From the IMG/VR virus record IMGVR_UViG_3300013005_000001, positions 62,001 to 126,000 of that record: a stretch of 64,000 bases of DNA. The stretch is one strand, 5' to 3'. Shown here one piece after another: positions 27,691 to 64,000 of this stretch. Under the pieces are notes generated by a model that did not search any database, was not told where the DNA came from, and worked only from the letters and a program-made list of their open reading frames with translations. Each line of letters starts with the position of its first letter. Within the stretch, counting starts at the first letter, position 1. Both the position numbers and the translations under genes were made by a program.

Positions 27691-27764
27691 TGGGCCCTCT
27701 GGGGCTCGAACCCAGGACACACGGATTATGAGTCCGATGCTCTAACCGACTGAGCTAAGGGCCC
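27691..27764 (-). tRNA. tRNA-Ile2/Met(CAT)
   Basis: GGGCCCT acceptor, CT-CAT-AA loop, canonical arms. Confidence 0.9.
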
Positions 27765-28687: not shown

Positions 28688-28689
28688 AG

Positions 28690-28762
28690 TACGCCCTCCG
28701 GGGCTCGAACCCGGGACACACGGATTAAAAGTCCGATGCTCTACCAACTGAGCTAAAGGCGC
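28690..28762 (-). tRNA. tRNA-Lys(TTT)
   Basis: Canonical cloverleaf, CT-TTT-AA loop. Confidence 0.92.
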
Positions 28763-30731: not shown

Positions 30732-30733
30732 AG

Positions 30734-30806
30734 CTCCCAGAGTAGGGCTCGAACCTACGACCAACGGATTAACAGTCCGTAGCTCTGCCAACTGAGCTAT
30801 CTGGGA
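30734..30806 (-). tRNA. tRNA-Asn(GTT)
   Basis: TCCCAGA acceptor, CT-GTT-AA loop. Confidence 0.93.
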
Positions 30807-31320: not shown

Positions 31321-31368
31321 GTTTATTTCCTTGTAAGTATTGTTGCATTGTTTAATATAAACATACAG

Positions 31369-31452
31369 TACCCGAGACCGGACTTGAACCGGTAAGAGGT
31401 TGCCCTCCGGGGGGTTTAAGCCCCCTGCGTCTGCCTATTCCGCCACTCGGGC
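31369..31452 (-). tRNA. tRNA-Leu(TAA)
   Basis: GCCCGAG acceptor, GGCAGACG D arm, long variable arm, CT-TAA-AC loop. Confidence 0.93.
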
Positions 31453-33795: not shown

Positions 33796-33869
33796 GATTT
33801 TTCCGTTTCATATAATATATATAAATAGATAATAATTAATAAATATTTTTTTTTTGTATTTACTAAATA

Positions 33870-36478: not shown

Positions 36479-39019
36479 CTAGAACTCAGCTTTGAGTCTA
36501 CGTGCAGGAGCAAGTGCTTCATTGTTAGTAAACACAATAGGTGAAAAGGTTGCATGATGCTTCTGGTATTCGAGCACATCGTTAAAGACGTGTTCTGTAC
36601 CATCAGGATCAGTGTAGACCCACTTATTGTGTCTAAAAGTTTTGATCTTATACTCATTGTCTTCGTATTGCATGATTACACGCTTACCAATACCGTAGTG
36701 AATGAGAGCTTTCTCAAGATACGGATATACAGTGCGGTTCATAACAATTTGGTCAGACAACTTACCTGAACTAGTAGGCTCTTTAATGCTTGAGCAATAC
36801 AAAGCAAGTACAAAGTCATGTTGATCCTCGACGCGTTCAAATGAATTGATTGCATCGACAACAAACTTGTACAAGTAATCCCATTCTTCACGCTTTATAG
36901 AACCAACAGTTTGAACGAATTCGTTGCTGTTAGTATTATAAATGTTCATACGGAACTTACGTAGTATGGGGCCAGCGTGAAAGTACAAGCGTTCAGCAAG
37001 AGCTTGAATAGTCGGAGACAATTCAATATTTTCTTGTGAATACTTGGTTACACGCTCTACATACAATGCATTGTAGTGCTTGCAGAGATTATTCAAATGA
37101 GTAAGTGTACCTTCGTAGGTTTCTACTTCAGGATGCTTACGAGCAAGATTCTTAAAGCGACCAAACCATAGATCATGATCTATTGGACGGCCGGAATTAA
37201 GAACCTCTTGAATAATAGTTTCTGCTTCAGCATCGATAGCTTGACGATCACGAGGATCTGAAGTCTGAGTACATCCGTCAATAGCAGATTCTAAAGAACA
37301 TACTTGAACTGGACGATGTTTTCCTAAAGTGGAAGAGTGAAGCATTGATCCGTTTACAAAACGACCAACGTTACCACCCATCATCGCAGTATCAATGTCT
37401 GCCATAACATCTGCTACAGAATAATTTTGCTCAGTCTTACGGACAGGCAAAGGGTTGTGATCACTTGGCAAACCAAGATACTTAACCTGATCGTTACGAA
37501 TTGCATAAGACAATCGAACTGGCCAGTTACGACCATTTACTTCAGGAAAGCTAATCACTTCGCCATTAGCTTTAGACCAAGTAGGATACCACTCGTCTTC
37601 AACATAGCTAAGAATGGTGTATTCACCATAGCCATTAGGAGAACGAGCGATAATAACTACTTTTTGACCGTCTTGAGTACCACCGGTAAGTGTACGATAG
37701 AATAACTTAAAGAAGTCGTCTTGATCATGACCGCCATGGCTCTCGTACATCTCAAGCCAGTCAAAGTCATTGACAACGTGAACACCGATATCATTGAGTC
37801 GACGAATTGTACCTTCTTCAACTTCAATATCCCATCCGCCCATACGTGCTAACGATTCAGGAATAACCTGCTCGTAAACACTGCACGGGATAGGGATACG
37901 GTTTTCAAGTGGCTTTGCGTGTGAGATAGCAAGAGTCTTAAACAACCACGGAGAATCCGTAATTGATAGTCCCATACTAGCCCAACGATAACCAACGTAT
38001 CCGATGCGAGCTTGAGCTTCTACATCTTCGACTTCTTTATTGTCACGTGAGAACTGACGAACAAAGTATGACTTCCAGTTGGTGAGAAGACGTCCATTGA
38101 CTGCGTCTTGGAACATCTTTTCATAGTCTTCTTTAAGCCACATTTCCATGTCAGCTTTGCGGAACAACTTTGGAAAGTTGATTACTGTTTGATCGTCAGT
38201 AACTACACGGGATTTAGGTCCTTGAGGTTCTGCGATAAGACGGAATCCACTAGAATAAGCAAGTTCTTTCTTAACGTTTTCACGAGTTGAAAGAATGTCA
38301 ACTCCTTCTGGAAGATTATCGGAAACAATGAAGTTGCCTTTAATCATGCCGTCTTCAAATAGAAGTCGACCATTGAATACGCGAGATTCAATTAGAAATC
38401 TGCGAAGGTCTGCTTGAATCTTTGGATCATAGTATACATCGTTTTGATCTTCTGAGTTGTTAGAGTCATAGATAGGCATTGCTTCTACAGCCTTACGAAT
38501 AAGACGTGAAGAAACAATGAAGCCACCATCGAGAAGTCGAGGTGTAGCTTGTTCTACCCATTCTGCCCAACCAGATTCAAAATTGAAACGTGTATAGTCA
38601 GTAGGATTAACCCATTGAATATTGACATCATCAAAATGAGCATTGATAAGTGCAGCACGGTGTACGGTTTTAAGACGCTTAGAGGTCTTGCCACCACCTT
38701 TGACTTTATATCCAGACTTAGTAAGTGCTGAAAGCCATCCGTTAGATCCCTTAAGGGATACAGCAACAATCTTGTTCTTGTCAACCAAAGCGTATTCGAC
38801 TGAAGGATGAGAAATAATCTTTTCAACTTCTGCACGGTCAAATACATTGGTGGGAATAGGCATTGTTGCTACACGAAACTCGGAAGCATCAACATTTTCC
38901 ATAAGCTCACGCATGATGCCTATGTCATAGAATCCAATTTGGTAGTCGTTAGTAGAACGCAATGGAGCATCCTTAAATGCTTTCATGCGTACTGTTGGTC
39001 GGTATGTATTAAAGTTCAT
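36479..39019 (-). CDS. putative single-subunit two-barrel RNA polymerase (RdRP/YonO-like), paralog 1
   Basis: SKRL, DGGFIVS, NGRLLFEDGMIKG, NVKKE, DDQT, GGHDQDD, ARSPN; AGGAGG RBS. Confidence 0.6.
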   Translation of the reverse strand: MNFNTYRPTVRMKAFKDAPLRSTNDYQIGFYDIGIMRELMENVDASEFRVATMPIPTNVFDRAEVEKIISHPSVEYALVDKNKIVAVSLKGSNGWLSALTKSGYKVKGGGKTSKRLKTVHRAALINAHFDDVNIQWVNPTDYTRFNFESGWAEWVEQATPRLLDGGFIVSSRLIRKAVEAMPIYDSNNSEDQNDVYYDPKIQADLRRFLIESRVFNGRLLFEDGMIKGNFIVSDNLPEGVDILSTRENVKKELAYSSGFRLIAEPQGPKSRVVTDDQTVINFPKLFRKADMEMWLKEDYEKMFQDAVNGRLLTNWKSYFVRQFSRDNKEVEDVEAQARIGYVGYRWASMGLSITDSPWLFKTLAISHAKPLENRIPIPCSVYEQVIPESLARMGGWDIEVEEGTIRRLNDIGVHVVNDFDWLEMYESHGGHDQDDFFKLFYRTLTGGTQDGQKVVIIARSPNGYGEYTILSYVEDEWYPTWSKANGEVISFPEVNGRNWPVRLSYAIRNDQVKYLGLPSDHNPLPVRKTEQNYSVADVMADIDTAMMGGNVGRFVNGSMLHSSTLGKHRPVQVCSLESAIDGCTQTSDPRDRQAIDAEAETIIQEVLNSGRPIDHDLWFGRFKNLARKHPEVETYEGTLTHLNNLCKHYNALYVERVTKYSQENIELSPTIQALAERLYFHAGPILRKFRMNIYNTNSNEFVQTVGSIKREEWDYLYKFVVDAINSFERVEDQHDFVLALYCSSIKEPTSSGKLSDQIVMNRTVYPYLEKALIHYGIGKRVIMQYEDNEYKIKTFRHNKWVYTDPDGTEHVFNDVLEYQKHHATFSPIVFTNNEALAPARRLKAEF

Positions 39020-39213: not shown

Positions 39214-39411
39214 CTAAGAAACTTTACGAGGGACAGAGTAACCCAACTTAGGGCCAGGAGCCTTAGTTAATGTTGCCTTGCCACTGATAAGTATGTTGTA
39301 ATCATTTAAAGCGTCACAAATTCGCAAGCAAATATTGTGAAGCTCATGGTGGTTGATTTGGTTTGTTTGCAGACTTTCGTAGATGTCTGAATACATTTGT
39401 GTATAATTCAC
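39214..39411 (-). CDS. hypothetical protein
   Basis: GGAG RBS. Confidence 0.5.
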   Translation of the reverse strand: MNYTQMYSDIYESLQTNQINHHELHNICLRICDALNDYNILISGKATLTKAPGPKLGYSVPRKVS

Positions 39412-40539: not shown

Positions 40540-41286
40540 TTATTCTTTAAATGGGTTGTTAGGGATTGGGACTTCTTGCTTTTCACCATCAATATAAATA
40601 AAAGATGGACGATCAGGAACAACATTGTAATGTGCCTGGTAAGCAACAGCGTGGTAATGGCTCAAAAAGATCTTGACAGCAAACCTACGTGCTTGAGCAT
40701 CTATCTGTTCTTGGGGAAGTTTTCCCAGAGATAGAGTATCAAGGTTCAGTTTATTTTTTGAACTTGCATTGTCAAGAAGTTCATAAGCTTTATCAGCATA
40801 CATTAAACTGTTGTTATTGTCAGTTCGTCTTGCGCGATCTTGCAAATATAGGTGTCCATAAAAACACTTGGAACGATTAGCATACTTTGAAAAATTTAAA
40901 CCAATTTTCCAACAAATGTTTTTAAGTTCACCATTGTATGCTGCTTTGCCACTGTCTTGTGCAGATGGATCAAAACCAGCATAACGCCAGAGAGCACCAG
41001 CTGTGTTGGCTTTGGTGATATCAATATGGGACATAATGCCCGCAGTAAGTACTGGGCCAAGACCATATTGGTTAATACACCATTCGCCAACAACTGAAGC
41101 TGTTGAATAGTTAGTAAGTGGACGCTTAATGAGAGCGTCTACCGAATCAAGCGAGTCAAGCATAAGCTCGACAAGTTCGATGTCATCTTCGTCTTTAAGA
41201 AGATGTTCGATAGATGCTTTAGCCTCTTGAATTTTGTAATAAGAAGCTACAATTTTGCGGACAGAATTGTTATCTAAATTGGACAT
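40540..41286 (-). CDS. stand-alone IS110 C-terminal/Nop-like RNA-binding protein (TasA-like), no RuvC domain
   Basis: YYKIQ coiled coil, GLGPVLTAGIMS.ID, ALWRYAG.DP, YN.ELK, ARRFAVKIFL. Confidence 0.65.
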   Translation of the reverse strand: MSNLDNNSVRKIVASYYKIQEAKASIEHLLKDEDDIELVELMLDSLDSVDALIKRPLTNYSTASVVGEWCINQYGLGPVLTAGIMSHIDITKANTAGALWRYAGFDPSAQDSGKAAYNGELKNICWKIGLNFSKYANRSKCFYGHLYLQDRARRTDNNNSLMYADKAYELLDNASSKNKLNLDTLSLGKLPQEQIDAQARRFAVKIFLSHYHAVAYQAHYNVVPDRPSFIYIDGEKQEVPIPNNPFKE

Positions 41287-50817: not shown

Positions 50818-53196
50818 CTAGATTGAGTTAAGTGCTCGGATAAGCCAATCAATTGGTTGATTAGGGCTCTTTGCACTGAACGTGTACAACCACTGGTCGT
50901 GATTGGCCTTTGGATACTGACGCTTGGCAATATACGAGTGATAAGCCAGTGACAGTATCTTACGGTTCATGTAGTCGACACCCTTGTCTGGGTTGTTGTC
51001 GATACGAGTGAACAGATCGCACAAGTAATCTACCCATGCTTCTGCGGTCATGATGCTACGCTTGACAGTGAGCTTTTGGTGTTCTTGAGCTGCCTTAAGC
51101 AATTCTTCTTCTGTCCATTCGATATTGAACAGCACCTCTGGCTCAACAAGAGTTGTATTGAGATGGTCTGACATTTGAGAAACAGTGGTCCGCACCAGCA
51201 TTTCTCGCATTATGTGCATCTGACACCAAGGTGACTCTTCAACTGTAGTAGTCTCAAGGTCCTTAGCATGTGCTTCTGGCATACGAGTTACCATCCAGAA
51301 CATATCCATCTTGGTACCGTTAAGCCCATTTGTTTCACGGATTTGGCGATACAGTTCACCAACCCATTGTGCAATGAGCTTTACGTCAGCAACAGTAGCG
51401 AGTCCCTGTTCGATGCCATCAATGATCTCTTCGTTGCGAGCGACAGGATTCTTGATGTATTCGTTGATCAGAGCATGCCAAAGAATCTTAGGCAATACTG
51501 CAGAACCAACTCCACCAGGGAATGCAAGTGCTACAAGTCGGCTACGTCCTTCATCACCCAGAGAATACTCAGGATTGATCTTTAGAGTAGAACTACCAGG
51601 AAGGGTTCCGGGAACAACCAAATTGTTCTCTTCCAAGTACGAAGATTGAGGAACAGCCATAAACAGCTCCTCATAATCGATGACAGGTGGAAATGCAGTA
51701 TACCGATGGAATACTGGACCATAGTTCTCGATTGGAATCATAGACCATTCACCAAAGTCATTTGGGTTACGGAGGATGAACGCCATGAGCTTGATGTCTC
51801 CATCAGCAAAACGCACTAGTCGAACATGGATCTTCCATGTATCGTCTAAGTCATCTCCACCATGGTTGATGTGATTCTTCTCGAAGTACTTACCAGGTAC
51901 CGCAAAGCAATGTGTCTTCTTGTGGTAGTAGCCACAGTCATTATACACATTCTTGAAACCAAAGATCTCAAGAGCTTCTTGTGTCATCACGTGAGTTGCA
52001 TAGGCCCATTCAACTGGAAACCAATGATACTGCTTATGACGCCATACATTACCAATGCCTTCGCCTTCTTCGTAAGCACCAAGGAATGACCTCTTTAAGC
52101 CATTGACCGTTAACCAGCGAAGAGTCTGAGTTGCATCAAATGGTATTCCAGCCTGATCAAGATCACGAACAGCCTTCTGCACAATCTCAAGCGTAGACAC
52201 AGGTCGACGGAATTCATCTTCCTCGTTATCTTGATACTGGGCAACTGCATTATTATTATCCACCAGGGTAGTCATGAACTTGAATTGCTTACCTTCTGCA
52301 AGGTCAACTTTTGCTTGTTCAAGGGCACCTACTAGACCACGAATGACATCTTCTTGAGTATACAGACCATTTACCTTCTGGTAGATGGCCATAGTAAGGT
52401 CATCACTCTTGACAGGAATAGCCGAATACGACGGTTCGATTGTAGCAAACTGCCAACCCTTAGTGCTGATCTCAGGCTTGATGTTGGGACCAAAGGTCTT
52501 GATATCGTACCCATCCATCATCTTATCTGGGAGGATTAGAGCATTGCCCTTGATCAACCCATCTTTCATGAGGACTCGGATCTGAACTACTGATGTTTGA
52601 CCATCAAGGATTAGTGCAATCTGTTTGTTGATCCATTCACGTGATGCACGATGGTTACTTACAACACAGCGTATAGCAAAGCTTTGGCTGATTGCGGAGA
52701 TTCCATCTACATCACTATCGATGTACCCAAGATCTAGGTGGTCGATAGTTTGAACCTTGATGTTGCCATCCGGATCATATGTCCACATGCATGACATGCG
52801 AACAATTTCTGCCAATCGCTTGCTCATCTTCTTTGAGTTCTTGATCACAAGACCAACCTCATCGAGTCCAGCAAGCCACGTTGTCGTACGTCCACGATGG
52901 GGCTTCACACCTTTAATCCGTACTGTGTACTGATCTGATGAGTTGCTCCAACGCAGGATTTCTGAATTGGCTAAAACTGGCAGTGCTGTAGGATCCTGTG
53001 AAGGAACCCCAGTGTGCCAGCTCTTGTTTATCTTTCGCACTTCGATCCGGTAATGATCCGGAAAGAATTGCTCCAGAAAGGCGGGCCAATAAGGACCACC
53101 ATCAAACTCCTCAAGAACTTTATCGTTCTCAAGGAGAGGGAGTGCAGTGATAAGCCGGAACCAGCCATCATTGCGTTTGACAATACCATGAAACAT
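50818..53196 (-). CDS. putative single-subunit two-barrel RNA polymerase (RdRP/YonO-like), paralog 2
   Basis: SKRL, DGISAIS, QIRVLMKDGLIKG, NIKPE, SDDLT, GGDDLDD, LRNPN. Confidence 0.62.
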   Translation of the reverse strand: MFHGIVKRNDGWFRLITALPLLENDKVLEEFDGGPYWPAFLEQFFPDHYRIEVRKINKSWHTGVPSQDPTALPVLANSEILRWSNSSDQYTVRIKGVKPHRGRTTTWLAGLDEVGLVIKNSKKMSKRLAEIVRMSCMWTYDPDGNIKVQTIDHLDLGYIDSDVDGISAISQSFAIRCVVSNHRASREWINKQIALILDGQTSVVQIRVLMKDGLIKGNALILPDKMMDGYDIKTFGPNIKPEISTKGWQFATIEPSYSAIPVKSDDLTMAIYQKVNGLYTQEDVIRGLVGALEQAKVDLAEGKQFKFMTTLVDNNNAVAQYQDNEEDEFRRPVSTLEIVQKAVRDLDQAGIPFDATQTLRWLTVNGLKRSFLGAYEEGEGIGNVWRHKQYHWFPVEWAYATHVMTQEALEIFGFKNVYNDCGYYHKKTHCFAVPGKYFEKNHINHGGDDLDDTWKIHVRLVRFADGDIKLMAFILRNPNDFGEWSMIPIENYGPVFHRYTAFPPVIDYEELFMAVPQSSYLEENNLVVPGTLPGSSTLKINPEYSLGDEGRSRLVALAFPGGVGSAVLPKILWHALINEYIKNPVARNEEIIDGIEQGLATVADVKLIAQWVGELYRQIRETNGLNGTKMDMFWMVTRMPEAHAKDLETTTVEESPWCQMHIMREMLVRTTVSQMSDHLNTTLVEPEVLFNIEWTEEELLKAAQEHQKLTVKRSIMTAEAWVDYLCDLFTRIDNNPDKGVDYMNRKILSLAYHSYIAKRQYPKANHDQWLYTFSAKSPNQPIDWLIRALNSI

Positions 53197-53364
53197 GATA
53201 TCCTCGCTTTCTGTTGAATTGGAGGCTTCAACATAGCCTTTTGTTTTAGTGGATAGGTTCTAGGTTTATGGCCTGTAGTCTATCCATAAAGAGAAAACCC
53301 CTTTCGGGGTCTCCTCCTTCTTCTAACAGAATGCTGTTAGGTATAGTCCCGTTGGATCCAACGA

Positions 53365-53808: not shown

Positions 53809-54058
53809 GACAACCTCCAAGTTGTATGTAGAGGTGAATATTATTGTTTTAACACGATGTACTCACATCACCGTGCCCACACTTTAGTTATCACATCTCT
53901 CAATATGATCTGGTAGTAAGCACCAGGTTCCTCCTGTAGTTTCGGCTCAGGCCCCTAGGGTATGATCTAGGATCTACCCATAAAAGAAAAACCCCCCGAA
54001 GGGAGTTCTTCTTCTCTTCCAACAGAACGCTGCTGGGCATGGTCAGGTCGAATACCGA

Positions 54059-54325
54059 CTAGTGGCGGATAAGCACCACGTATGTCATCATCTTTGTGTT
54101 AACCCACTTGCCGTCGGTCCACGCAGAGGTGTATTTAACCCTGGTTGGTCGCTTTTCAGCAATGTTTCTGTTGTTCACAAGGAACAATTCTGCATCTGCT
54201 TGCTGGCTGAACCAGTAGATGGTGTATCCCTCATAGGACCTTGCGGTTGCGAAACCACCAGTGCCTGTCAGGAAAATGTCAGAGTTAAGGAACTCCGACC
54301 CATCATTTTTACTGAATTGGGGCAT
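54059..54325 (-). CDS. hypothetical protein
   Basis: AGGAGGAG RBS. Confidence 0.6.
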   Translation of the reverse strand: MPQFSKNDGSEFLNSDIFLTGTGGFATARSYEGYTIYWFSQQADAELFLVNNRNIAEKRPTRVKYTSAWTDGKWVNTKMMTYVVLIRH

Positions 54326-54566
54326 GACTCCTCCTAAAGTGTCATGTTGCATATGCACACCACGTGCATACGACTAACTATTTACTCGTTGACCTGGAGC
54401 TGCTAAGCCACAGGACCAGCATTAAATACTGGGTGGATATAGATCTAGGACCTACCCATAAAAAAAAGATTTAAGCCCTAGGTATAGGGTCACGTCCCAA
54501 TGTTTTAGAGATAGTTGTACTAGTGGTAGTTTTATTATTTAATAATATGATCCATGTCATGACGCA

Positions 54567-54812
54567 TCACTCCTCGATCTGATCGAAGAGACTTGGCTGG
54601 TGGAACCATGGGCAGACAGGAGTTGGCTGACCTTTTCTGTCATGCATATAGATGAACTGATGACACGCCCGGCACAAAACCATCTTATAAGGATGCCTTG
54701 ATGTGAACGTGTCATACTGGTAATCATCCAGTCCATGGGTACGACATTCATCGCATTGTTTGTAACCGCTGTATTCCCAACGACGGTTGCTTTTCTTTTT
54801 GTTGTATGACAT
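54567..54812 (-). CDS. small zinc-finger protein
   Basis: CDEC...CRAC; AAGGAG RBS. Confidence 0.55.
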   Translation of the reverse strand: MSYNKKKSNRRWEYSGYKQCDECRTHGLDDYQYDTFTSRHPYKMVLCRACHQFIYMHDRKGQPTPVCPWFHQPSLFDQIEE

Positions 54813-54850
54813 TTCTGTCTCCTTTTTGTTGTTGTTGTTTTTCATGTTAA

Positions 54851-56707
54851 TTACGCCCACCCTGCAATTTCTACGCTGAGTTTATCTTTCAAGAACTTAA
54901 TGATTGGCTTGCGTGTTTCCTCGGCAAGAGGCTGATTGTGCTTACCAAGAAGCTGAGTCATTGTGCCTTGAACCTCACCATTAAGTATTTGTAATGGCGT
55001 AGAACTCCTTCTTACTTCTGCGTGCCCAATCCAATTGCCTTCAACATCTTTGAAACCAATGATGATTGTCTGACCGTCGTAAACACGATCTGCGTAAGAG
55101 CCAATGCAATTGTTTTGAGTAGCTCCCCATTCAACAAGGTCATGCGTCATCTTAGGAACAATCATTTGAATCCCTTCTGCAATCCACTTTCCATCAAATT
55201 CTGCAAATGCTCTTAGGTAAGGAGTGTTTCGCAGCTTCTTGTTTTCTGTCTTGATCTTGTTGTACTCTGCAGTAACAAAGTCATGGATTTGTTCAACATT
55301 CATCCTTGATCGTGCTACGTGCTGCTTAATTGCAGTTCTGTGGTTACGGCCCTTGATTTGTGTAAACATGTGTGCTGCATCAACAGCGTGCTGCCCATTT
55401 AAATACAAATGACCAGGATCTTTGTCAGATGTAAACATTTGCAAGAGATATTCATCCTTATAACCAAAGTCCCGAAAGAATGCCTTAAAACGTTTTCTCA
55501 TTAAAGGACTTGAGTTATAGCGCATGTAGTGACACACTACGTCAAGATCTAACTTCTCTAGCACTTGAGGATTGAACCCACGGGCAATGATCAACAGGTT
55601 AATAGCTCCACGAAGATGATGGAGCGTATTGATCTTGTTTATGTCACCAAAGATCTTCTTAGTTACTCCGTGCGGATGCATGAAAGCCTTATTCAAGATT
55701 TTCTTAGTTGATGTCTCTCCACCAATCCAATAGATGTCAGATTGAGTAATTCCATTTGGGTACAGCCCTGCACACGTACCACCATACTCAGTTGGCATGT
55801 ACTTGAGGATTTTCAATACATCCTCTTCCTTAATCAACTGATCACGCAAACCAAGCACTGTCAGTTCGATTGTGTCATCCAGTGGAACCAATTTCTTTCT
55901 TGCCATCTGGCCGTAAATAAGACCCCAGATCGGTGTGCCTGTCTTTTTGTTCTTCCACATGAGACGGTACCCATTGTTGGTTTTGTTCATGAATAGAACT
56001 CCAGGCCACTTCTTTTGGTAGTGCTGACCCCTGGTGTTAATAGTTGCTGTTTTGAATTCAACAATCCAACCAGCTTTTTCACCAGGCATTTCCGAAACGT
56101 ACATCTCATTGATAGAGACGTAATCAAACAACTTGTGTTCCTCATATTCATCTCCATATGTTTGTTCAAATTTCAAGGCTCGTTTGGTGCGTTCCCCTTT
56201 GTTAACAACTCGAGTTGAGTATGCGCACAATGGAGAGAAGTTGTCTTCGCCGGAACCCAACAGTCCCAACTTTTCTACCTTCTCATTGAACTTTTTAATG
56301 GCATTTCTTGCATCCAAGTAGTTGTCATTAATAAGAGCCAATGACTCTATTACTTCAATCTTGGATTGGAACTCTTGCATTGAACTACCAGCTCGTGGGA
56401 AGGAACGATCATTGCCCACCATGGTCATAACACTTAAATGATGATCAATCTCAGCTCTACTCATTACTTGTTGGATCTGAGTGATATCAAGTATGGCTTT
56501 TGCCAAGTCCATTGAATTCATTTCTGCTGGATCCATGTTTGCAAACCAGATGTTATATTGCTCTAGCGTGCCTTTCTTTGTTTGAATTGTGAGCTTCATG
56601 GGCTCTACCTCTTTCTGTATAGGGAATGGGTTTTTCTCCTGCGGAAGCAGGATTGGTGGTTGTGGATAGTGGGTGGATGGGACATCAGTTTGCTCGAAAC
56701 TGCTCAT
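54851..56707 (-). CDS. PcfJ-like domain protein
   Basis: C-terminal VPK...DLVEWG..QNNCIGSY...V..G...I...Q..G.HN; alternative start at 56599. Confidence 0.8.
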   Translation of the reverse strand: MSSFEQTDVPSTHYPQPPILLPQEKNPFPIQKEVEPMKLTIQTKKGTLEQYNIWFANMDPAEMNSMDLAKAILDITQIQQVMSRAEIDHHLSVMTMVGNDRSFPRAGSSMQEFQSKIEVIESLALINDNYLDARNAIKKFNEKVEKLGLLGSGEDNFSPLCAYSTRVVNKGERTKRALKFEQTYGDEYEEHKLFDYVSINEMYVSEMPGEKAGWIVEFKTATINTRGQHYQKKWPGVLFMNKTNNGYRLMWKNKKTGTPIWGLIYGQMARKKLVPLDDTIELTVLGLRDQLIKEEDVLKILKYMPTEYGGTCAGLYPNGITQSDIYWIGGETSTKKILNKAFMHPHGVTKKIFGDINKINTLHHLRGAINLLIIARGFNPQVLEKLDLDVVCHYMRYNSSPLMRKRFKAFFRDFGYKDEYLLQMFTSDKDPGHLYLNGQHAVDAAHMFTQIKGRNHRTAIKQHVARSRMNVEQIHDFVTAEYNKIKTENKKLRNTPYLRAFAEFDGKWIAEGIQMIVPKMTHDLVEWGATQNNCIGSYADRVYDGQTIIIGFKDVEGNWIGHAEVRRSSTPLQILNGEVQGTMTQLLGKHNQPLAEETRKPIIKFLKDKLSVEIAGWA

Positions 56708-56829
56708 GGTTACCTCCATGTTGGGACCTGGCGAAGGTCTTGGTTCTAGCCATAAAAGAAAAACCCCCCGAAGGGAGTTCTTCTTCTCTTCCAACAGAAC
56801 GCTGCTGGGATGGTCAGGTTAAATACCGA

Positions 56830-57276
56830 CTAGAGGATGTCACCATCTTCTTCGTCATTGTACTCATCAAGAAGCTTCCGGAGCTCCTCTGAAACGCCCA
56901 TGGATGAACCAAGAACGTCAAGAGTCTTTTCTCCATTAGCCCAGCACGAAGCTGCAAAGCCATTAACCGCAACACCATTGTTATTGGTGTAGTTGTTTGG
57001 CTTTACTTCTGTAAGAGTGAAATCTTCACACTTCAGAACCAGCTTCAACCCAGCTGCTTTTGCCTTAGCAAATGCATTAGCCATCAATTCGAGCTTGTCG
57101 GGAAAGACTGTCATCTTTACCTTGAGCGTCTTGGCTTGTGCCTCGGAAACTCCCTTTGCAGAGAGCAAGTCCGGGGTAAGCCCAATGAGGACAGTCCAGA
57201 AAACTGTTCCATCCCCCTTGTTGTTAGGCGCTGGTGCTGTGTTGACGTACAGGTACGTCTTTTTTGTTTCTGACAT
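56830..57276 (-). CDS. paralog family A protein, copy 3
   Basis: Clearly similar to copy 2, same upstream TTGGAGGTTGTC RBS. Confidence 0.75.
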   Translation of the reverse strand: MSETKKTYLYVNTAPAPNNKGDGTVFWTVLIGLTPDLLSAKGVSEAQAKTLKVKMTVFPDKLELMANAFAKAKAAGLKLVLKCEDFTLTEVKPNNYTNNNGVAVNGFAASCWANGEKTLDVLGSSMGVSEELRKLLDEYNDEEDGDIL

Positions 57277-57493
57277 GACAACCTCCAAGTTGTATGTAAG
57301 ATGCGGATGTACAGAATGCACATACGACTACTATTTACTCGTTACAGGAGCTGTTAAGCCACTGTTGACCACACCAAAAGGTGCTGAGGTTGTAATCTAG
57401 TTACTACCCATAAAAGAAAAACCACACTGGATGTGTGGCTCTTCTTGACCGTTATAAATGCATAGGTGGTCAACCTTGGTCATGAGTTAAAAC

Positions 57494-57706
57494 TCAATTG
57501 TTTTGCAAGTCTGCAATCTGCTCACGGGTGAATGTGTCAAACACCCACCGGATTGCCTTGCGGGAACATTTTTCATAGCTCCACTTGTGCTTGGGGTCAC
57601 TTTGGATTTTGTCTGCAATCTTGATGATTGCCAAGCCGAGCTCAAGCCCGTATTGACGACAAATCCTTTCTTGTACTTGAGTTTCCTCAAATTGGGACTG
57701 GGACAT
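57494..57706 (-). CDS. hypothetical protein
   Basis: AAGGAG RBS in cassette. Confidence 0.6.
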   Translation of the reverse strand: MSQSQFEETQVQERICRQYGLELGLAIIKIADKIQSDPKHKWSYEKCSRKAIRWVFDTFTREQIADLQNN

Positions 57707-57819
57707 GGATTTCTCCTTTTGTTGGGCCCAAGCTTCATGCCTGGGGACTACCCATAAAAAAAAGATTTTGATATTATAGATATAGTTATAGGATTAAAGG
57801 CTAGTGTCACCCACATCAC

Positions 57820-58251
57820 CTACTGCCAAACCTTTGCATCGATTACATTCAACCCAAGGCTTTTCATCATCTCCAGGTTAGGATCTTCGTCATCCATAGC
57901 CCATTGCAGGTCATATTTCTTCAAAAGCATCTTGATCATGTGCTCTTTGTATTTCCTGCTACTAATTCCATTCCACTTATTAGGCCTGTGCCAGATCGAA
58001 TCAACCAAATGGTCAATCTCTAATTCCCGCAACTTCTTCCAAGTATTTGCCTTGCAACTTTGCCCTCTTGCAGTTAAGAACACAAGTTCATAACCCATCA
58101 ATTTAAAGGCTTTAAGCATAGCTATACCTCCATCTAGACCATTTGCATTTAGCGTTTCTTGAACCCACTGGTCATCACGCTCTGGTGACCAGTTTGGTGT
58201 GACACTCACAAGAGTGCCGTCGATGTCCACAAGGACAGCTTTTGGTTTCAT
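57820..58251 (-). CDS. HAD-family phosphatase (polynucleotide 3'-phosphatase-like)
   Basis: DIDGTL, LTARG, K, MDDED motifs. Confidence 0.8.
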   Translation of the reverse strand: MKPKAVLVDIDGTLVSVTPNWSPERDDQWVQETLNANGLDGGIAMLKAFKLMGYELVFLTARGQSCKANTWKKLRELEIDHLVDSIWHRPNKWNGISSRKYKEHMIKMLLKKYDLQWAMDDEDPNLEMMKSLGLNVIDAKVWQ

Positions 58252-58375
58252 GATTTTCTCCAATCACTAGGGTCTAGACTTGGTGCCTAGAAACTACCCA
58301 TAAAAGAAAAACTCCCCTAAGGGAGTCCTTCTTCTCTTCTAACAGAACGCTGTTAGGTATTGTCAATCAGTTGGA

Positions 58376-58702
58376 TTAGCTGTTAGGGCACTTACCCTCT
58401 ATGAGGAAGCGTTTGCTCCTCATGCATCCGTATTCCTCAACACGAGCCACTACCTTGTTGTAGTGAATCTTGTCTCCCGGCACACGTATGTATGCCTTGT
58501 TCATCAGTGCTCCAATGAGACGACCAACACCCCATGCGATGTCGCTCGCTTCATCTTTGAACTCTGCCATGCTCTTTGCTTCAAAAAGTTCGTAGATTTC
58601 TCCACGACGCTTTCCTTCCACAAGATCACGACTGAACAAGTCAGCAATGCCCTCCTTGAACGTGTGCACTTTCATGCATCCGCACCAATTTGTTGTTTCC
58701 AT
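58376..58702 (-). CDS. hypothetical protein, weak MazG-like acidic motif
   Basis: E..E...DEASD. Confidence 0.5.
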   Translation of the reverse strand: METTNWCGCMKVHTFKEGIADLFSRDLVEGKRRGEIYELFEAKSMAEFKDEASDIAWGVGRLIGALMNKAYIRVPGDKIHYNKVVARVEEYGCMRSKRFLIEGKCPNS

Positions 58703-58790
58703 TGTTACCTTTCTAAGCAGGGATCTCAACCCTACTCATAAAAAGAAAACGGCCCTATCTCCCGACAGTACCGTTCCCTTTTCCAACCAC

Positions 58791-59141
58791 TTAGTAGTCG
58801 CGCTGGTTGAAGACGCAATCTCCAGTAAATGGCCTATCACCGGTATTGTATTTACCATCTCGATGTTCAGTCATTACTAAAGGTTTTGTACCTTCAGACA
58901 GAATTTCCTTAATGTACTTTTCTAGCTGTTGGTACTGCTTCTCGTAGGATTGCTCATTACCAACCTGACTGTGACACTCAATGTTCTCAAGCATGTTGAC
59001 AATGGTCTTTTCAACATCTGCATAAACATCGGTGATGTCATAGCCCCAGAAAGCCCAGTAATTGACGTATGCACGCCCCTCACTGGTGTGACCCAGTATG
59101 ATGTTGATCATCGTAATGATGATTTCCTTTGGAATGAACAT
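58791..59141 (-). CDS. hypothetical protein
   Basis: GGAGG RBS in cassette. Confidence 0.6.
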   Translation of the reverse strand: MFIPKEIIITMINIILGHTSEGRAYVNYWAFWGYDITDVYADVEKTIVNMLENIECHSQVGNEQSYEKQYQQLEKYIKEILSEGTKPLVMTEHRDGKYNTGDRPFTGDCVFNQRDY

Positions 59142-59277
59142 GTTTTACCTCCATGTTCTAATGCCCACACCACGTTGGTGTAGGACTTGGTAGCTTTCAG
59201 ACTACCCATAAAGGAAAAACCACCCTGGATGGGTGGTATCCTTCAGGTTTACTTGATTCAACCTTGTTGCTACAGTT

Positions 59278-59769
59278 TTACTTGTGAGCTTTGTGTGCCT
59301 TTGCTGGGTAACTACCCCAGTTTGCGTTGCGGACGTGATCCCAGGTGCAGTGACGAGAACTGCAGACGCTGCACTTTGGATGCGTTGCGCCGTTTCTCAC
59401 TTTCTTCACTTGGACTCTTTTTGCGTCCGCCTTTTCCATTTCTTCCTGAAGAAGATACATCTCATCGAGCTTGGTGTTTGCTTCGATGTACTCTTTGCGG
59501 GCAGTGCCCAGAGAGATGTAGTAGTCCAGTTTGTCTGAGCAGAACCAGCAGTAGCCCTCGTTGTGACCACTTGTGTCCCACTCAGTGCTTCCGCACGCTT
59601 TGCACGGTGAGCATTCCTGAACTTCTTCTTCCTTGACACTCTTCAGTTCGTTGATGGTTTCCTTGATGGATTCCTTGACGAAGTGCTTGATTGCCCTTTG
59701 CTGGAAGTTGATCACCAGATTGGAGACGAAGATCGCCACCAGACTGAGAATCAAGAAAAGATCTGCCAT
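59278..59769 (-). CDS. membrane-anchored protein with CxxC zinc fingers
   Basis: N-terminal TM, CKAC, CWFC, CSVC. Confidence 0.6.
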   Translation of the reverse strand: MADLFLILSLVAIFVSNLVINFQQRAIKHFVKESIKETINELKSVKEEEVQECSPCKACGSTEWDTSGHNEGYCWFCSDKLDYYISLGTARKEYIEANTKLDEMYLLQEEMEKADAKRVQVKKVRNGATHPKCSVCSSRHCTWDHVRNANWGSYPAKAHKAHK

Positions 59770-59924
59770 AACAGATTCCTCCTTTTTTTGTGCCCACACC
59801 CCAATGGTGTAGGACTTGGCAGCTTTCAAACTACCCATAAAAGAAAAACTACACTGGATGTGTAGCATTCTTTTGAACCGTTATAATAATATGTATAGGT
59901 GGTTAACCTTGGTCATACTTCTCG

Positions 59925-60245
59925 TTAAGGAAAGAAAGAGTCTCCTATTTCTTCACATGGATCACACCACATACCGTAACGATCTACGGGTGTAGTGTGA
60001 CACTTGTGGCATTTTGCAATGCAGCCGACATGTGCAGAAAGAAACTGATTCCTCTCCTCTTCTGAAACCAGGACGTAGTAACTGTCGTCGTTTTCCCATT
60101 CCAACCTTTCAGTTGGGAAATGGTAACCACAGTTACATACCCATGTCACCGGTGCAAGCCTGCCATCAATGTCATACTCACTTTCCGGATAGTATCCAAA
60201 GCGAAGAGCCCAGATACCTTCTGGTAACTTGAAGTTCAAAGGCAT
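59925..60245 (-). CDS. Cys-rich zinc-finger protein
   Basis: CNC, CHKC, CDPC; AAGGAGG RBS. Confidence 0.6.
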   Translation of the reverse strand: MPLNFKLPEGIWALRFGYYPESEYDIDGRLAPVTWVCNCGYHFPTERLEWENDDSYYVLVSEEERNQFLSAHVGCIAKCHKCHTTPVDRYGMWCDPCEEIGDSFFP

Positions 60246-60351
60246 TTCTGCCTCCTTTCAGTTTTGCCCACATCGGAGTGATGCAGGACTTGGCAATCGT
60301 CAGACTACCCATAAAAGAAAAACCACACTGGCTGTGTGGCATTCTTTTGCA

Positions 60352-60624
60352 TCAAACTTCAACAATTTCCAATATGGATTGTGAATCCAACATGGTCAAG
60401 AGTCCGTCTGCTGCGTCGATGTATACAACTGTTCCAGCCAGAACTTGATGACACTCTGTGCCAAAATGTTCTTGATAGAATTCCATTGCTACATCGTTGG
60501 ATGGAATGATGAATTCGTCAATCACTTCTTCCTGATCGAAATCAGACCAGATATGAACGTAACGAATGTACACCCTTTTTCCTGCTTCCATTTTGCCTCC
60601 TTTCTCATTCGGTAATATGGACAT
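60352..60624 (-). CDS. hypothetical protein
   Basis: AGGAGG RBS. Confidence 0.55.
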   Translation of the reverse strand: MSILPNEKGGKMEAGKRVYIRYVHIWSDFDQEEVIDEFIIPSNDVAMEFYQEHFGTECHQVLAGTVVYIDAADGLLTMLDSQSILEIVEV

Positions 60625-60703
60625 GGACCTTCCTCCTTGAGTAATCGTCAGACTACCCATAAAAGAGAAACCTCAGGAACTAACCCTGAGGCTCTCTATC
60701 ATG

Positions 60704-60994
60704 TCACTTACTTATTGGAATCTGGATTGTTTGTCCAGGCCGCAAAGATGTGCCATTATGCACAACCAGGTAATCGGTTAGTGGTTGATATCCACTGCAA
60801 TTACCTGACTGCACTTGTTCTGATGCAATCCCTGTGATGGTGTCTCCCGACTTTACCACAACCTGGATTGCTTGTTTACAAAGGAACTTCTCTTGTAAAG
60901 AGTTCCCCAAAAATGAAATGACGTTAATCATTCCAATGATTGCAAGAACCAAGACAACAAGTGCCATGATTCTCCTGTACCAGTAGATGCTCAT
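60704..60994 (-). CDS. membrane-anchored LysM-domain protein
   Basis: TM helix then VVVKSGDTITGIA...N...LRPGQTIQIP. Confidence 0.8.
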   Translation of the reverse strand: MSIYWYRRIMALVVLVLAIIGMINVISFLGNSLQEKFLCKQAIQVVVKSGDTITGIASEQVQSGNCSGYQPLTDYLVVHNGTSLRPGQTIQIPISK

Positions 60995-61141
60995 CACATC
61001 TCCTTTCAGTTTTGCCCACACGGTTATGCAGGACTTGGTGGTCGTCAGACTACCCATAAAAGAAAAACACCATACTGGATGTATAGTGTTTCTCTATTAG
61101 TGATTGTTCTGTTGCCAGGCGTCACTACTGCCCCGTACTAA

Positions 61142-61318
61142 TTACAGATCCTGCCTGGTATTCAAATACTCTTTAAGCTGTTTAAGCTTCAAGTGCATTT
61201 CTTCCTTGCATTCATCTATATTTAGGTGATGGTTCTCATCGTGCATATACATGACTGACTGTTGCCATTCACATGTTGCACCATAAGCATCACTTAACAA
61301 GTCTGCTAGATTGTTCAT
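61142..61318 (-). CDS. 58 aa protein, tandem copy 1
   Basis: AGGAGG RBS; MNNLADLLSDAYGATCEWQ... Confidence 0.7.
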   Translation of the reverse strand: MNNLADLLSDAYGATCEWQQSVMYMHDENHHLNIDECKEEMHLKLKQLKEYLNTRQDL

Positions 61319-61450
61319 CTTGCTTCCTCCTTTCTGAATAGATGGCCTACCAAGCCTAGAATCTACCCATAAAAGAAAAACTACACTGGATGTGTAGTTC
61401 TTCTTCGTGATTGTTCTGTTGCCAGGCGTCACTACTGCCCCGTAGTCTAA

Positions 61451-61627
61451 TTACAGATCCTGCATGTTATCCAAATACTCTTTCAGGTTTTTAAGCCTCA
61501 AGCGCATTTCTTTATCACACTGGTCTATATTTAGGCGATGGTTCTCATCATGCATCCACATAACTGAATGTTGCCATTCACATGTTGCATTAAGAGCATC
61601 GCTTAACAAGGATGCTAGATTTTTCAT
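61451..61627 (-). CDS. 58 aa protein, tandem copy 2 (absent from the ORF track)
   Basis: MKNLASLLSDALNATCEWQHSVMWMHDENHRLNIDQCDKEMRLRLKNLKEYLDNMQDL. Confidence 0.7.
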   Translation of the reverse strand: MKNLASLLSDALNATCEWQHSVMWMHDENHRLNIDQCDKEMRLRLKNLKEYLDNMQDL

Positions 61628-61752
61628 CTTGCTTCCTCCTTTCTAGATAGATGGCCTACCAAGCCTAGAATCTATCCACAAAAAGAAAACCCCTTTCGGA
61701 GTCTTCTTAATCACCAATTATAATAATATTTATAGGATGGTGAATCCTTGGT

Positions 61753-62172
61753 CTAACCCTTCGTGAAGCCCTCGCTTGCGTTGAAGACATTGATTTCCAT
61801 CTTCGTGATGTGTTCTTCGTTATACATAACGACGATGTCATCACGCTGGATTTCTTTCTTCAGCCAAGCTTGCAGACATTCAGTCACAACATGATGACTG
61901 ATTTCTTTTGTTGGGCTCAGAAGACAAAACGGGTTGGTCTTTTCCCATTCGGAGTCATACTTGCTGACTACGGTAAACATCCAATTGAAGCCCTTTTCAA
62001 GGCCAATCAGCTCGACATCAACCCAGTTGGCAATGGGAACTACCTTTCCGTTGATGTATCGGCCCGGAGACACAATTTCATCAAGAGTCAGGTCGTAGCT
62101 TGCCCACAGAAGCAGTGCTCCAATAGGAAGATTCATGAGAGCTTCGACAAGCTCCCAATCCTTCTCGTCCAT
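61753..62172 (-). CDS. hypothetical protein
   Basis: AAGGA RBS in cassette. Confidence 0.6.
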   Translation of the reverse strand: MDEKDWELVEALMNLPIGALLLWASYDLTLDEIVSPGRYINGKVVPIANWVDVELIGLEKGFNWMFTVVSKYDSEWEKTNPFCLLSPTKEISHHVVTECLQAWLKKEIQRDDIVVMYNEEHITKMEINVFNASEGFTKG

Positions 62173-62542
62173 GGTTTCCTTTCGGGTGGCCCCAACCAAG
62201 GGACTCTTAGTCTACCCATAAAAGAAAAACCCAGGAACTGACCCTGGGTTATCTTTATTGTCTAGTTTTCGAGTAGCTTCGCCAATACATCTAGCACTAA
62301 ATCCCATTCTCCCCATTCTTGGTCTGCAACGGTCTTACGGTTAATTGCATCGGCTAACTTAGTTTTCGCTGATTCGATATCGGCTAGAACTTCTTTTGGC
62401 AATGACATGGATTTCTCCTCTGTTAGATTAGGCTTTCATACCTAATGACTATTCATAAAAGAAAAACCCCAGGGGATTGCCCTGAGGTTCTTCTTGACAG
62501 AGTATTTATTACACACCCCTGACTGGTGTGGGCACAAGTGGC

Positions 62543-62833
62543 CTACCGACTCAAGTCCGAAGGGCAGTCTCCAGAATGGCTAACCACTCTGTAGAGCTGC
62601 TCTCCGGTTGGTCCGAACTCCCTCTGAGGGTGGAAATTGCTCGGCTTCCGAAGAAGCTCAAGCAATCCTACCTTCTTATGGCAGAACAGACAACACTTCT
62701 CTGGTGAAAAGAGTCGAATTGTCATCAAATAACTCAAGGTTATCTGATTAAATTCGCTCTTCACCAAAGAAGACCGAAGTCGGTTGTGGAGAATGATCAT
62801 AAACCAGTAGACTCGAAAGTCTTCTGGTACCAT
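62543..62833 (-). CDS. hypothetical protein
   Basis: RBS before MVPEDF. Confidence 0.5.
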   Translation of the reverse strand: MVPEDFRVYWFMIILHNRLRSSLVKSEFNQITLSYLMTIRLFSPEKCCLFCHKKVGLLELLRKPSNFHPQREFGPTGEQLYRVVSHSGDCPSDLSR

Positions 62834-62970
62834 GATGATACCCCCTTTCTCCATGGTTTCACCCATGGGTAAAGGCGCACACCGGGTTGGTGCACGACTT
62901 GGCAACCTTGCGGCTACCCATAAAAGAAAAACCCAGGAACTGACCCTGGGTTATCTTTACGAGTTTTACA

Positions 62971-63291
62971 TCAAGCATCGTAGAAAAGCTTAATAAAGCC
63001 TTCTTCGATATCCTTTGTAGGAAGAACTTTAATTGAATAAAGATCATCTGCAAAGAGACTGATGTATCCACCTTCTTGGGCAACGGCCTGCAAATCATGC
63101 ACCCCCATAGGGACACAGACATACATGTCGTTTGGCAACGATACCAATGGATGCTTCTGGTTGTCCAGATAGCACCCGTCTAGCACTCGGCTGTGCGCCT
63201 GTGTGCATGACATGTGTACCTCCATAAGGGTGTCGCCCTCAAAGAAGAACACGTGGTACGTATTCCTAGAGTAAATGGTTACCTCTTCCAT
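62971..63291 (-). CDS. hypothetical protein
   Basis: AAGGAG RBS in cassette. Confidence 0.6.
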   Translation of the reverse strand: MEEVTIYSRNTYHVFFFEGDTLMEVHMSCTQAHSRVLDGCYLDNQKHPLVSLPNDMYVCVPMGVHDLQAVAQEGGYISLFADDLYSIKVLPTKDIEEGFIKLFYDA

Positions 63292-63502
63292 AATTGCTCC
63301 TTTCAGTTAGCAAGTAGGGGTTGCGTACACCGGTTGGTGCACGACTAAGTAGCTGTTGGACTACCTATAAAAGAAAAACGGACGCATACGAGACGCCCGC
63401 TTTCCTTACCTGTGATCATTCGGCTTCTTTTTTCTCACTTACTAGATCTTCTGTTGCCAGGCCAAAGATATGGCCCCGAATCAAATTCAATTAGCGATCA
63501 AC

Positions 63503-63688
63503 TCAGATGTGCTTCTTGATGGTCCTTGCTCCGAAGAACGAGGCAACCACAAGAACGCCCAACCAGTTAACCAAGCCAAGAACGATTGCAACAACCGTCC
63601 AAGCCCAGCTCACTGCAGGAGTCACCAAGAGAACAACCACAAGGATTGCAAACCTGTGCTCCCGGAGGAACGCTTTGATTTTGTTCAT
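63503..63688 (-). CDS. small membrane protein
   Basis: AAGGAGGT RBS, two TM helices. Confidence 0.6.
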   Translation of the reverse strand: MNKIKAFLREHRFAILVVVLLVTPAVSWAWTVVAIVLGLVNWLGVLVVASFFGARTIKKHI

Positions 63689-64000
63689 TTCACCTCCTTT
63701 CACAAAGATGAACGAGCGCATGCCGGAGTGGCACACGACTTAGCAACCTCTCGGCTACTCATAAAAGAAAAACACCACACTGGCTGTGTGGTGCCTCTTT
63801 ATCAGTGATTGTGATTAACAGAGCGTCACTACTGCTCCGGCTTAATACATGCAACTAACCGTTATATGAACGATCGCAGCTAGGGCAACGTGTTTCTCCA
63901 TTATCTGGGAACTCGTGTCCACACCACCTGCACTTAAGCTTGAGTAAAAGGCGCATCTAACCTCCTTTCTTTGGGCTCAGGCTTCCATACCTGATAACTA

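Follow-up and report, generated by a model that had tools for sequence, protein, structure and literature searches.

Does a phage protein whose acidic loop reads DxDD, and whose R-x-P motif lies behind that loop, still belong among the two-barrel RNA polymerases (RNAPs)? Two-barrel RNAPs transcribe the genes of all cells, and a DxDxD loop preceded by R-x-P is treated as universal in them. The superfamily includes the cellular RNAPs, QDE-1, the RNA-dependent RNA polymerases (RdRPs) of eukaryotes, YonO, crAss gp66, and gp64 and gp96 of phage P23-45. The question is posed by an open reading frame (ORF) at positions 36479..39019 of a stretch of 64,000 nucleotides, here called the window, from phage record IMG/VR UViG_3300013005_000001, to which it is 100% identical and which is 210,302 bp long, so that 64 kb of approximately 210 kb are covered. 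Judged from its predicted structure, the product of this ORF (paralogue 1, beside a second member of the family, paralogue 2, in the same genome) is probably a single-chain two-barrel nucleotide polymerase, and most likely a DNA-dependent RNAP of this freshwater phage. What is new is the catalytic-motif architecture, the family and its paired organisation; the fold and the likely chemistry are already known.

Motifs of paralogue 1 and their conservation

The start codon of paralogue 1 is ATG, with AGGAGG five nucleotides upstream, and there is no second long ORF at that place. The gene and its motifs, with barrels named after the double-psi β-barrel (DPBB), are as follows.

36479..39019, minus strand: paralogue 1, single-chain two-barrel RNA-polymerase-like protein (ORF of 846 amino acids; AlphaFold2 and Foldseek)
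38675..38689, minus strand: basic motif K111-T-S-K114-R115 at a helix start, N-terminal of the first barrel (conservation; helix 112-120 by DSSP in the model)
38525..38530, minus strand: D164-G165, opening a strand of the first (beta-like, DPBB-B) barrel (conservation)
38336..38368, minus strand: R218...G224..K227-G228, β-hairpin of the first barrel (strands 214-221 and 224-233 in the model)
38270..38272, minus strand: K250, additional conserved basic residue of the first barrel
37715..37735, minus strand: G429-G430-H-D432-Q-D434-D435, putative metal-binding loop of the second (beta'-like, DPBB-A) barrel (invariant aspartates)
37637..37645, minus strand: R459-S-P461, which ends strand 453-459 and lies 24 residues behind the aspartates
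37277..37366, minus strand: G552...N556 helix and E577..D581 (ESAIDG), after the second barrel (conservation)

An earlier sequence-only reading of this DNA had listed a series of motifs, and all of them are present in the translation in the order it gave: GGGKTSKRLK, LLDGGFIVSS, R218-x5-G-x2-K227-G, K250, TDDQT, HGGHD432-Q-D434-D435 and A-R459-S-P461. In the first barrel the residues concerned are K111, K114 and R115, then D164-G165...S170, then R218-LLFED-G224-MI-K227-G228; TDDQT begins at T274, and the string of the acidic loop runs H428-GG-H-D432-Q-D434-D435. R-x-P had been placed about 25 amino acids after the aspartates, and R459 is found 24 residues past D435. Both peculiarities to which that reading drew attention, the non-canonical DxDD loop and the R-x-P behind it, are real and family-wide.

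Every one of these motif residues is invariant in 32 homologues of 50-72% identity. Across a wide alignment of 123 full-length members, reaching down to approximately 20% identity, few residues survive, and the survivors are those of the same motifs. Eight are conserved in 100% of the sequences (K114, G165, K227, D432, D434, D435, R459 and P461), and a further group is near-invariant (D164, K250 and G429, each 98%, and R115, 97%). Conservation is less strict at K111 (90%), Q277 (92%), G228 (89%) and R218 (87%), and sites after the barrels are retained as well (G552 94%, N556 85%, E577 85%, D581 95%). The same pattern recurs in a separate alignment of 48 sequences and in the clade of paralogue 2. 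An acidic loop of the form xGGxDxDD (mostly HGG) occurs in nearly every full-length member, and DxDxD in none; in the wide alignment GGxDxDD is present in each of the 123 sequences. The motifs are conserved far above chance and are not random strings.

Eight residues are invariant in all two-barrel RNAPs (Ruprich-Robert and Thuriaux, PMC2919709), which in QDE-1 are D709, R738 and K743 of the first barrel and R962, P964, D1007, D1009 and D1011 of the second (PMC2919709). When mapped by sequence, every class of invariant residue appears to have an absolutely, or almost absolutely, conserved counterpart in paralogue 1; residue class and order fit D, R/K, K and R.P, D.D.D except in the spacing of the loop and the position of R.P. 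D164 is a candidate counterpart of QDE-1 D709 (Rpb2 D837), and R218 and K227 are candidate counterparts of QDE-1 R738 and K743 (Rpb2 K979 and K987). By analogy, the helix with K111, K114 and R115 is a candidate duplex-binding helix for nucleic acids (after Chaban, 2024). G552...N556 and E577..D581 form a candidate bridge-helix region, and line up with NIGEYSN and the ID.AKT motif of YonO in an alignment that is itself non-significant.

A second paralogue in the same genome

A signature scan of all ORFs in the window brought out a second member of the family.

50818..53196, minus strand: paralogue 2, same family and same genome, 792 amino acids (hhalign, AlphaFold2 and Foldseek)
51841..51861, minus strand: putative metal-binding loop G446-G447-D-D449-L-D451-D452, invariant in the paralogue-2 clade
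51763..51771, minus strand: R476-N-P478, again behind the aspartates (hhalign alignment and paralogue-2 clade)

Its signature, HGGDDLDD...ILRNPNDFGE, has HGGxDxDD...RxPN in common with paralogue 1, and an hhalign comparison of paralogue 2 with the paralogue 1 family is significant (probability 96.4%, E 1.1e-9, 25% identity, 499 columns), with all key residues aligned. Relatives of paralogue 1 were found on 46 viral contigs, many of them 170-268 kb long. Both paralogues are present on 13 viral contigs, where paralogue 2 is always 12-14 kb upstream of paralogue 1 on the same strand, and this order is kept down to 51% identity for paralogue 1 and 45% for paralogue 2. An ancient duplication in a lineage of freshwater jumbo phages is the best-supported reading of the pair. 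The 268-kb contig IMGVR_UViG_3300042868_009074 carries two genes of the paralogue-1 type, 56% and 49% identical to the query and approximately 210 kb apart, which could come from one more duplication, or from an assembly that is chimeric or concatenated.

Predicted fold of both paralogues

The AlphaFold2 model of paralogue 1, built from the 32-sequence alignment, is confident, with a predicted local distance difference test score (pLDDT) of 84.9 and a predicted template modelling score (pTM) of 0.80; the section that includes the acidic loop and the RSP hairpin (residues 371-520) has a pLDDT of 88-94. In this model the beta-like-barrel candidates D164, R218, K227 and K250 sit on strands of the first barrel, and the acidic loop lies between helix 418-427 and strand 436-445, which is the canonical position of the D-loop. 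Searched against the PDB with Foldseek, the model gave three significant matches, all of them two-barrel RNAPs: QDE-1 (7y7q_A; E 1.4e-8, probability 1.0, TM 0.43/0.39), 8f72_A (E 2.6e-5) and 8f5m_A (E 4.3e-5). The latter two are gp64 of phage P23-45 and gp62 of phage P74-26, both non-virion RNA polymerases. Behind them comes a weak, non-significant tail of isolated DPBB domains (formylmethanofuran dehydrogenase subunit D, p97-N). In a viral structure library, two uncharacterised 'uncultured Caudovirales phage' proteins match paralogue 1; one of them, A0A6J5M9G6, is a relative of 17% identity, and its independent database model superposes at TM 0.62.

The model of paralogue 2 (pLDDT 89.2, pTM 0.86) is, as a prediction, an independent confirmation of the fold. 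Its Foldseek matches are headed by four QDE-1 entries at approximately 3e-6 and include gp64 at 8e-3; below these come designed DPBBs, VCP/p97-N, expansin, poxvirus RNAP and Bacillus subtilis RNAP. The sequence-only reading had proposed a two-barrel polymerase, to be given up if no double-psi β-barrel fold appeared; AlphaFold2 and Foldseek do find that fold, and the models of both paralogues match QDE-1 and gp64. At the level of fold, the predicted models thus place the family within the two-barrel (DPBB) superfamily.

Extent of the family and searches against known families

At the sequence level the family stands apart. Paralogue 1 has no match in Pfam (E up to 1), PHROGs or NCBIfam, and paralogue 2 none in Pfam or NCBIfam; YonO and gp64, which were run as controls, were likewise without a match in Pfam or NCBIfam, so the negatives from these two databases weigh little. 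PF05183 is matched by some relatives of YonO, by YonO itself not, and by no member of this family. Neither tblastn nor megablast matched anything in 50,697 phage records, and no account of a DxDD two-barrel polymerase or of the enzyme of this phage family was found in the searchable literature. PMC7824862 mentions 'NCgl1702-like' RNAPs on actinobacterial mobile elements, with which the family may have a link.

The family itself is large. A profile search of 1.84 billion cluster representatives returned at least 407 clusters (50% identity), 113 of them at E <=1e-30, whose representatives are approximately 700-1800 amino acids long, and 235 metagenomic homologues had E <=1e-3 among the candidates scored. 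In annotation these homologues are always unnamed or 'hypothetical protein'. Among 185,579 species genomes only three contigs of metagenome-assembled genomes matched, and their taxonomy is inconsistent (Cyclobacteriaceae, Acidibacter and Limnohabitans); on this evidence the family seems restricted to uncultured phages, which are probably lytic. The three contigs are probably mis-binned phage DNA, and no host was assigned from them.

The survey of Chaban et al. chose candidates by the pattern [RK]xPx{20,100}DxDxD, and all of its tabulated catalytic motifs are DxDxD (PMC10770324). With a DxDD loop and R-x-P behind it, the present family would have been filtered out.

Order of the second barrel

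In the model, the second barrel of paralogue 1 consists of strand 376-387, helix 388-393, the hairpin 404-408/413-416, helix 418-427, the D-loop, and strands 436-445, 453-459 and 467-472, and AlphaFold2 gives the same pattern of elements for paralogue 2. There are two strands between the helices against three in the canonical barrel, and three strands after the D-loop against one. The sequence-only reading had raised a possible circular permutation; in its simple, whole-domain version this clashes with the unusual order of secondary structure in the model. As modelled, the order of elements would suit either of two histories: a segment swap that moved the R-x-P hairpin, or loss of R-x-P from an otherwise ordinary barrel that acquired an accessory hairpin.

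We give slightly less than an even chance to the latter, namely that the second barrel has the ordinary double-psi topology, with the canonical R-x-P lost and an extra C-terminal hairpin (453-472) providing a replacement arginine. The elements from strand 376-387 to strand 436-445 can plausibly be mapped onto an ordinary barrel, and a permutation of the whole domain does not suit them. In a local profile alignment the RSP hairpin pairs with the RSP hairpin of YonO (score 16.6-17.7, probability <=2%), and this hairpin anchors the best local alignment between the two. When the alignment columns were swapped, with controls, so that the RSP hairpin stood ahead of the D-loop segment, the score rose from 17.7 to 20.1, and when the hairpin was deleted it fell to 14.0; all probabilities were <=2%. 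The gain is thus not significant, as an ordinary topology would have it, yet the direction of the changes and the strand numbers, which are off the canonical count on both sides of the D-loop, would speak for a hairpin that has moved. Mean-field direct coupling analysis of residues 370-500 (effective number of sequences 148) was noisy and dominated by gappy loops, and gave weak hints of coupling for Y441-V455 and for G395/I398 with I457/L444.

Comparison with known polymerases

QDE-1 of Neurospora and Thielavia (2J7N, 7Y7Q, 5FSW), with the eukaryotic RdRPs, is the best structural match for both paralogues. Like the phage protein, it carries both barrels on one chain, the beta-like one ahead of the beta'-like one, and it has a D-G motif and an R...K-G hairpin in the first barrel, R-S-P on a strand-turn-strand, and GG before the acidic loop. 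The order of the second barrel differs, however: RSP...(approximately 45 amino acids)...GGDYDGD in QDE-1, but GGxDxDD...(24 amino acids)...RSP in the phage protein. The spacing from D to R in the first barrel is also longer, at 54 residues against 29. QDE-1 is a eukaryotic silencing enzyme and has no detectable sequence homology to the phage protein.

YonO of the Bacillus prophage SPbeta, which has been shown experimentally to be a DNA-dependent RNAP (PMC5467207), is of almost the same length (839 against 846 amino acids), is phage-encoded, and likewise carries both barrels in one chain. In a greedy alignment, the DG, R..KG, RSP, G...N and ID motifs follow a similar order in YonO and paralogue 1. 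YonO has the canonical order within the second barrel, with RSP at 492 and DNDGD at 535, which paralogue 1 reverses. It also has a Cys-rich C-terminal tail like that of many family members. Many members of the superfamily end in W...C...G......C, which aligns with this zinc-ribbon-like tail of YonO; the protein in the window is without these cysteines.

P23-45 gp64 and P74-26 gp62 are the second-best structural matches and are without sequence similarity to the family; gp64 is smaller (616 amino acids) and canonical, with RRP at 288 and DYDGD at 326. P23-45 resembles the present phage in that it encodes two very divergent paralogous two-barrel RNAPs (gp64 non-virion, gp96 virion; PMC10770324), and in that, within the early region, one RNAP gene is preceded by a short repeated promoter specific to the phage (PMC10770324), for which there is here only a candidate. 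gp96 is fused to the tape-measure protein (PMC10770324), and any likeness of roles between that pair and this one would be an analogy. phiKZ and AR9 have jumbo genomes and two sets of two-barrel RNAP genes, as here, with possible independence from the host RNAP. Their enzymes, however, are split beta/beta' homologues with DxDxD loops that can be detected by sequence search, whereas those described here are single chains of the QDE-1/YonO type.

A repeated element upstream of paralogue 2

Paralogue 2 stands at the end of an array of small genes bearing the core TTTTATGGGTAG.

53974..63773, minus strand: GTTTTTCTTTTATGGGTAG in 18 clustered copies, each on the gene strand (0.06 expected)
53280..53298, minus strand: degenerate copy of the motif, GTTTTCTCTTTATGGATAG, with a GC hairpin before it, ending 84 nt upstream of the start codon of paralogue 2

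Each cassette of the array is laid out as a GC hairpin of variable sequence whose stem stays paired, GTTTTTCTTTTATGGGTAG, a leader of approximately 55-75 nt, a Shine-Dalgarno site and a small gene. The array region is enriched in terminator-like sites (32 against 9.5 expected) and has no excess of sigma-70-like sites (14 against 16.7 expected). An exact TTTATGGGTAG also stands 85-95 nt upstream of paralogue 2 in relatives in which this protein has only 47-59% identity. The motif is absent from all 46 loci centred on paralogue 1, and a scan of the window found no further over-represented motif. The GTTTTTCTTTTATGGGTAG array is a candidate set of phage-specific promoters, or of terminator-plus-promoter cassettes, for an array of early genes. 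It could be read by an injected phage enzyme, by the host enzyme or by one of the two paralogues.

The ATG inside the repeated motif is rejected as a start codon, since several copies run into a stop within 4-5 codons and the true genes begin approximately 55-75 nt downstream, behind a Shine-Dalgarno site. The 'TAT-GGG' of the motif is reminiscent of T7-type start sites. In 6-7 cassettes a leader of approximately 55 nt between the motif and the Shine-Dalgarno site is conserved, as listed here.

59151-59221, 59780-59850, 60254-60324, 60999-61069, 62863-62933 and 63310-63380: conserved leader segments

The leader can fold as a hairpin, e.g. CCTACACCA-ACG-TGGTGTGGG, and may be a regulatory structure of the 5' untranslated region; Rfam gave no match for the motif region and leader. 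Segments are also duplicated within the small-gene array at 72-86% identity (53362-53830 and 56827-57298; 61138-61381 and 61447-61690), so that this early-like region holds paralogous small genes. Inside the array, at 54851-56794 on the minus strand, lies a gene for a protein of 647 amino acids whose PcfJ-like domain belongs to a family described from conjugative plasmids.

Proposed role of the pair and alternative explanations

If paralogue 1 polymerises nucleotides, its active site would lie between the barrels. The first barrel (approximately residues 125-265) would supply D164, with R218, K227 and K250 holding the RNA 3' end and the phosphates of the nucleoside triphosphate (NTP). In the second barrel (approximately 376-472), D432, D434 and D435 would bind the catalytic Mg ions from a loop that is one residue short (DxDD), and the hairpin 436-445/453-459 would return R459-x-P461 to that loop, where it could take on the canonical role of R-x-P in positioning the ribose and the NTP. 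By analogy with the virion and non-virion RNAP pairs of P23-45, phiKZ and AR9, the two paralogues may split the work, and they probably serve different temporal classes of genes. As paralogue 2 falls within the regulon of the TTTTATGGGTAG element, at the end of the small-gene array, it would probably be made early; paralogue 1, lying beside helicase and nucleotide-metabolism genes, would be made with or after the replication genes. Together the pair could free much of the transcription of the phage from the host enzyme.

Several points weigh against a polymerase of this kind. The three invariant carboxylates are spaced i, i+2, i+3 and not as DxDxD, and no conserved R/K-x-P precedes the loop, although in all known families [RK]xP lies 20-100 residues before it. 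A search of PDB sequences with the family profile found no polymerase, and its only match, to p300, is at chance level (E 1.3). Comparisons by hhalign were not significant with P23-45 gp64 (probability 0.3%) or with a YonO family of 79 sequences (<=2%); the description of the protein as YonO-like therefore holds for fold and motif class and fails at the level of sequence. TM-scores to QDE-1 are moderate (0.39-0.43) and the root-mean-square deviation is high, as expected of multi-domain models, and a metal site at which the eight residues would gather is putative. The repeated element might be recognised by the host RNAP with a phage factor, or might be mainly a terminator. Template (DNA or RNA), product (RNA or DNA) and early or late roles are proposed from analogy and gene position only.

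A two-barrel polymerase might instead serve replication. Together with the neighbouring helicase, it would synthesise RNA on single-stranded DNA in the manner of a primase, or DNA in the manner of PolD. Paralogue 1 does sit among helicase and nucleotide-metabolism genes: a superfamily 2 (SF2; DEAD/ResIII) helicase is encoded two ORFs downstream, and a dCMP deaminase lies nearby in relatives. PolD shows that the fold is capable of DNA synthesis (PMC10770324), and QDE-1, the best structural match, is reported to make RNA on single-stranded DNA (PMC9508822). The 64-kb window yielded no recognisable DNA polymerase or primase; with 64 of approximately 210 kb covered, however, replication genes may lie elsewhere. 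The structural matches include RNAPs and no PolD (neither the 50 best Foldseek matches of each model nor the search of PDB sequences contained a chain of PolD DP2), and two diverged paralogues with a repeated promoter-like element suit the transcription pattern of phages that have their own RNAPs. We regard a replicative enzyme as improbable.

An RdRP like the eukaryotic silencing enzymes, which would act on RNAs of the phage or the host, amplifying or converting them, for example in regulation or counter-defence, would agree with the place of QDE-1 at the head of the structural matches for both paralogues, and with the DG...S and R...KG of the first barrel, which are closer to the RdRP/YonO type than to the multisubunit type. 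crAss gp66, however, transcribes DNA. YonO, which has the same type of motifs, is a DNA-dependent RNAP (PMC5467207), and the phage members of known function, gp64 and gp96, transcribe DNA (PMC10770324). No RNA-based system is evident nearby, and such an enzyme seems to us quite unlikely; the paired genes and the promoter-like array agree better with transcription than with a replicative or an RNA-dependent role. It is very improbable, finally, that the protein is a catalytically dead relic whose RNAP fold has been kept for DNA binding or for a role in the virion or in ejection. The metal-binding loop is non-canonical and some phage RNAP-fold proteins are fused to structural ones, as gp96 is to the tape measure (PMC10770324). 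Against this, more than 120 very divergent sequences and both paralogues show absolute conservation of the three acids, of R.P and of the first barrel's basic residues, which is the signature of a maintained active site.

A DNA-dependent RNAP thus remains the preferred reading of paralogue 1. A bolder version of it, in which the family is a deep, unrecognised two-barrel branch whose R-x-P hairpin has moved past a shortened DxDD loop, and whose duplicated early/late (or virion/non-virion) pair reads its own TTTTATGGGTAG promoter independently of the host in widespread freshwater jumbo phages, is put forward tentatively and is rather doubtful as a whole; if true, the most conserved active site in biology would tolerate a change in chain topology. 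A large, globally distributed phage family has kept the fold and broken both motif rules, so that motif-based surveys miss its members, and it bears on the evolution of the RdRP/YonO/phage branch of the superfamily. If the proteins are active, they would widen both the known sequence space and the geometry of the catalytic centre, more phages would be counted as carrying their own transcription machinery, and an RNAP pair with a sharply defined candidate promoter would be open to study in vitro.

Neighbouring genes and host

Most of the remaining ORFs of the window have no family match. Those that are recognisable encode an S8 subtilase, the SF2 DEAD/ResIII helicase, an Rpf-like plus SLT transglycosylase, a weakly matching IS110-type transposase-like protein, a protein of the uracil-DNA glycosylase (UDG) superfamily and an NAD-dependent sugar epimerase.

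32269-35543, 42488-43363, 40540-41286, 11482-12327 and 2327-3337: recognisable neighbours
3363-3438, 10604-10676, 27690-27764, 28689-28762, 30733-30806 and 31368-31452, minus strand: six tRNA genes, Gly-TCC, Arg-TCT, Met, Lys-TTT, Asn and Leu-TAA
18157-19773, minus strand: AAA+ ATPase
20159-20908, minus strand: ThiF/E1-like protein
20919-22571, minus strand: 550-amino-acid protein with a prokaryotic JAB domain

The last three, spanning 18157-22571, make up a phage-borne set for ubiquitin-like conjugation and deconjugation. At 9518-10129 there is a weak match to a proteasome subunit (E 0.008), which is below the cut-off and may be unrelated.

In relatives of 66% identity, a gene of the WhiB family lies directly upstream of paralogue 1 (locus L001, 9351-9602; locus L002, 4360-4611); the window ORF in the same place (39214-39411, 65 amino acids) is not recognisably WhiB. 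Taken together, WhiB, the Rpf-type transglycosylase and DUF732 in relatives point to an actinobacterial host, and the host is probably an actinobacterium. The G+C content is 0.42-0.47 in 50001-64000, where paralogue 2 and the motif array lie, against 0.30-0.41 in 1-50000, and the sign of the GC skew flips near 52 kb.

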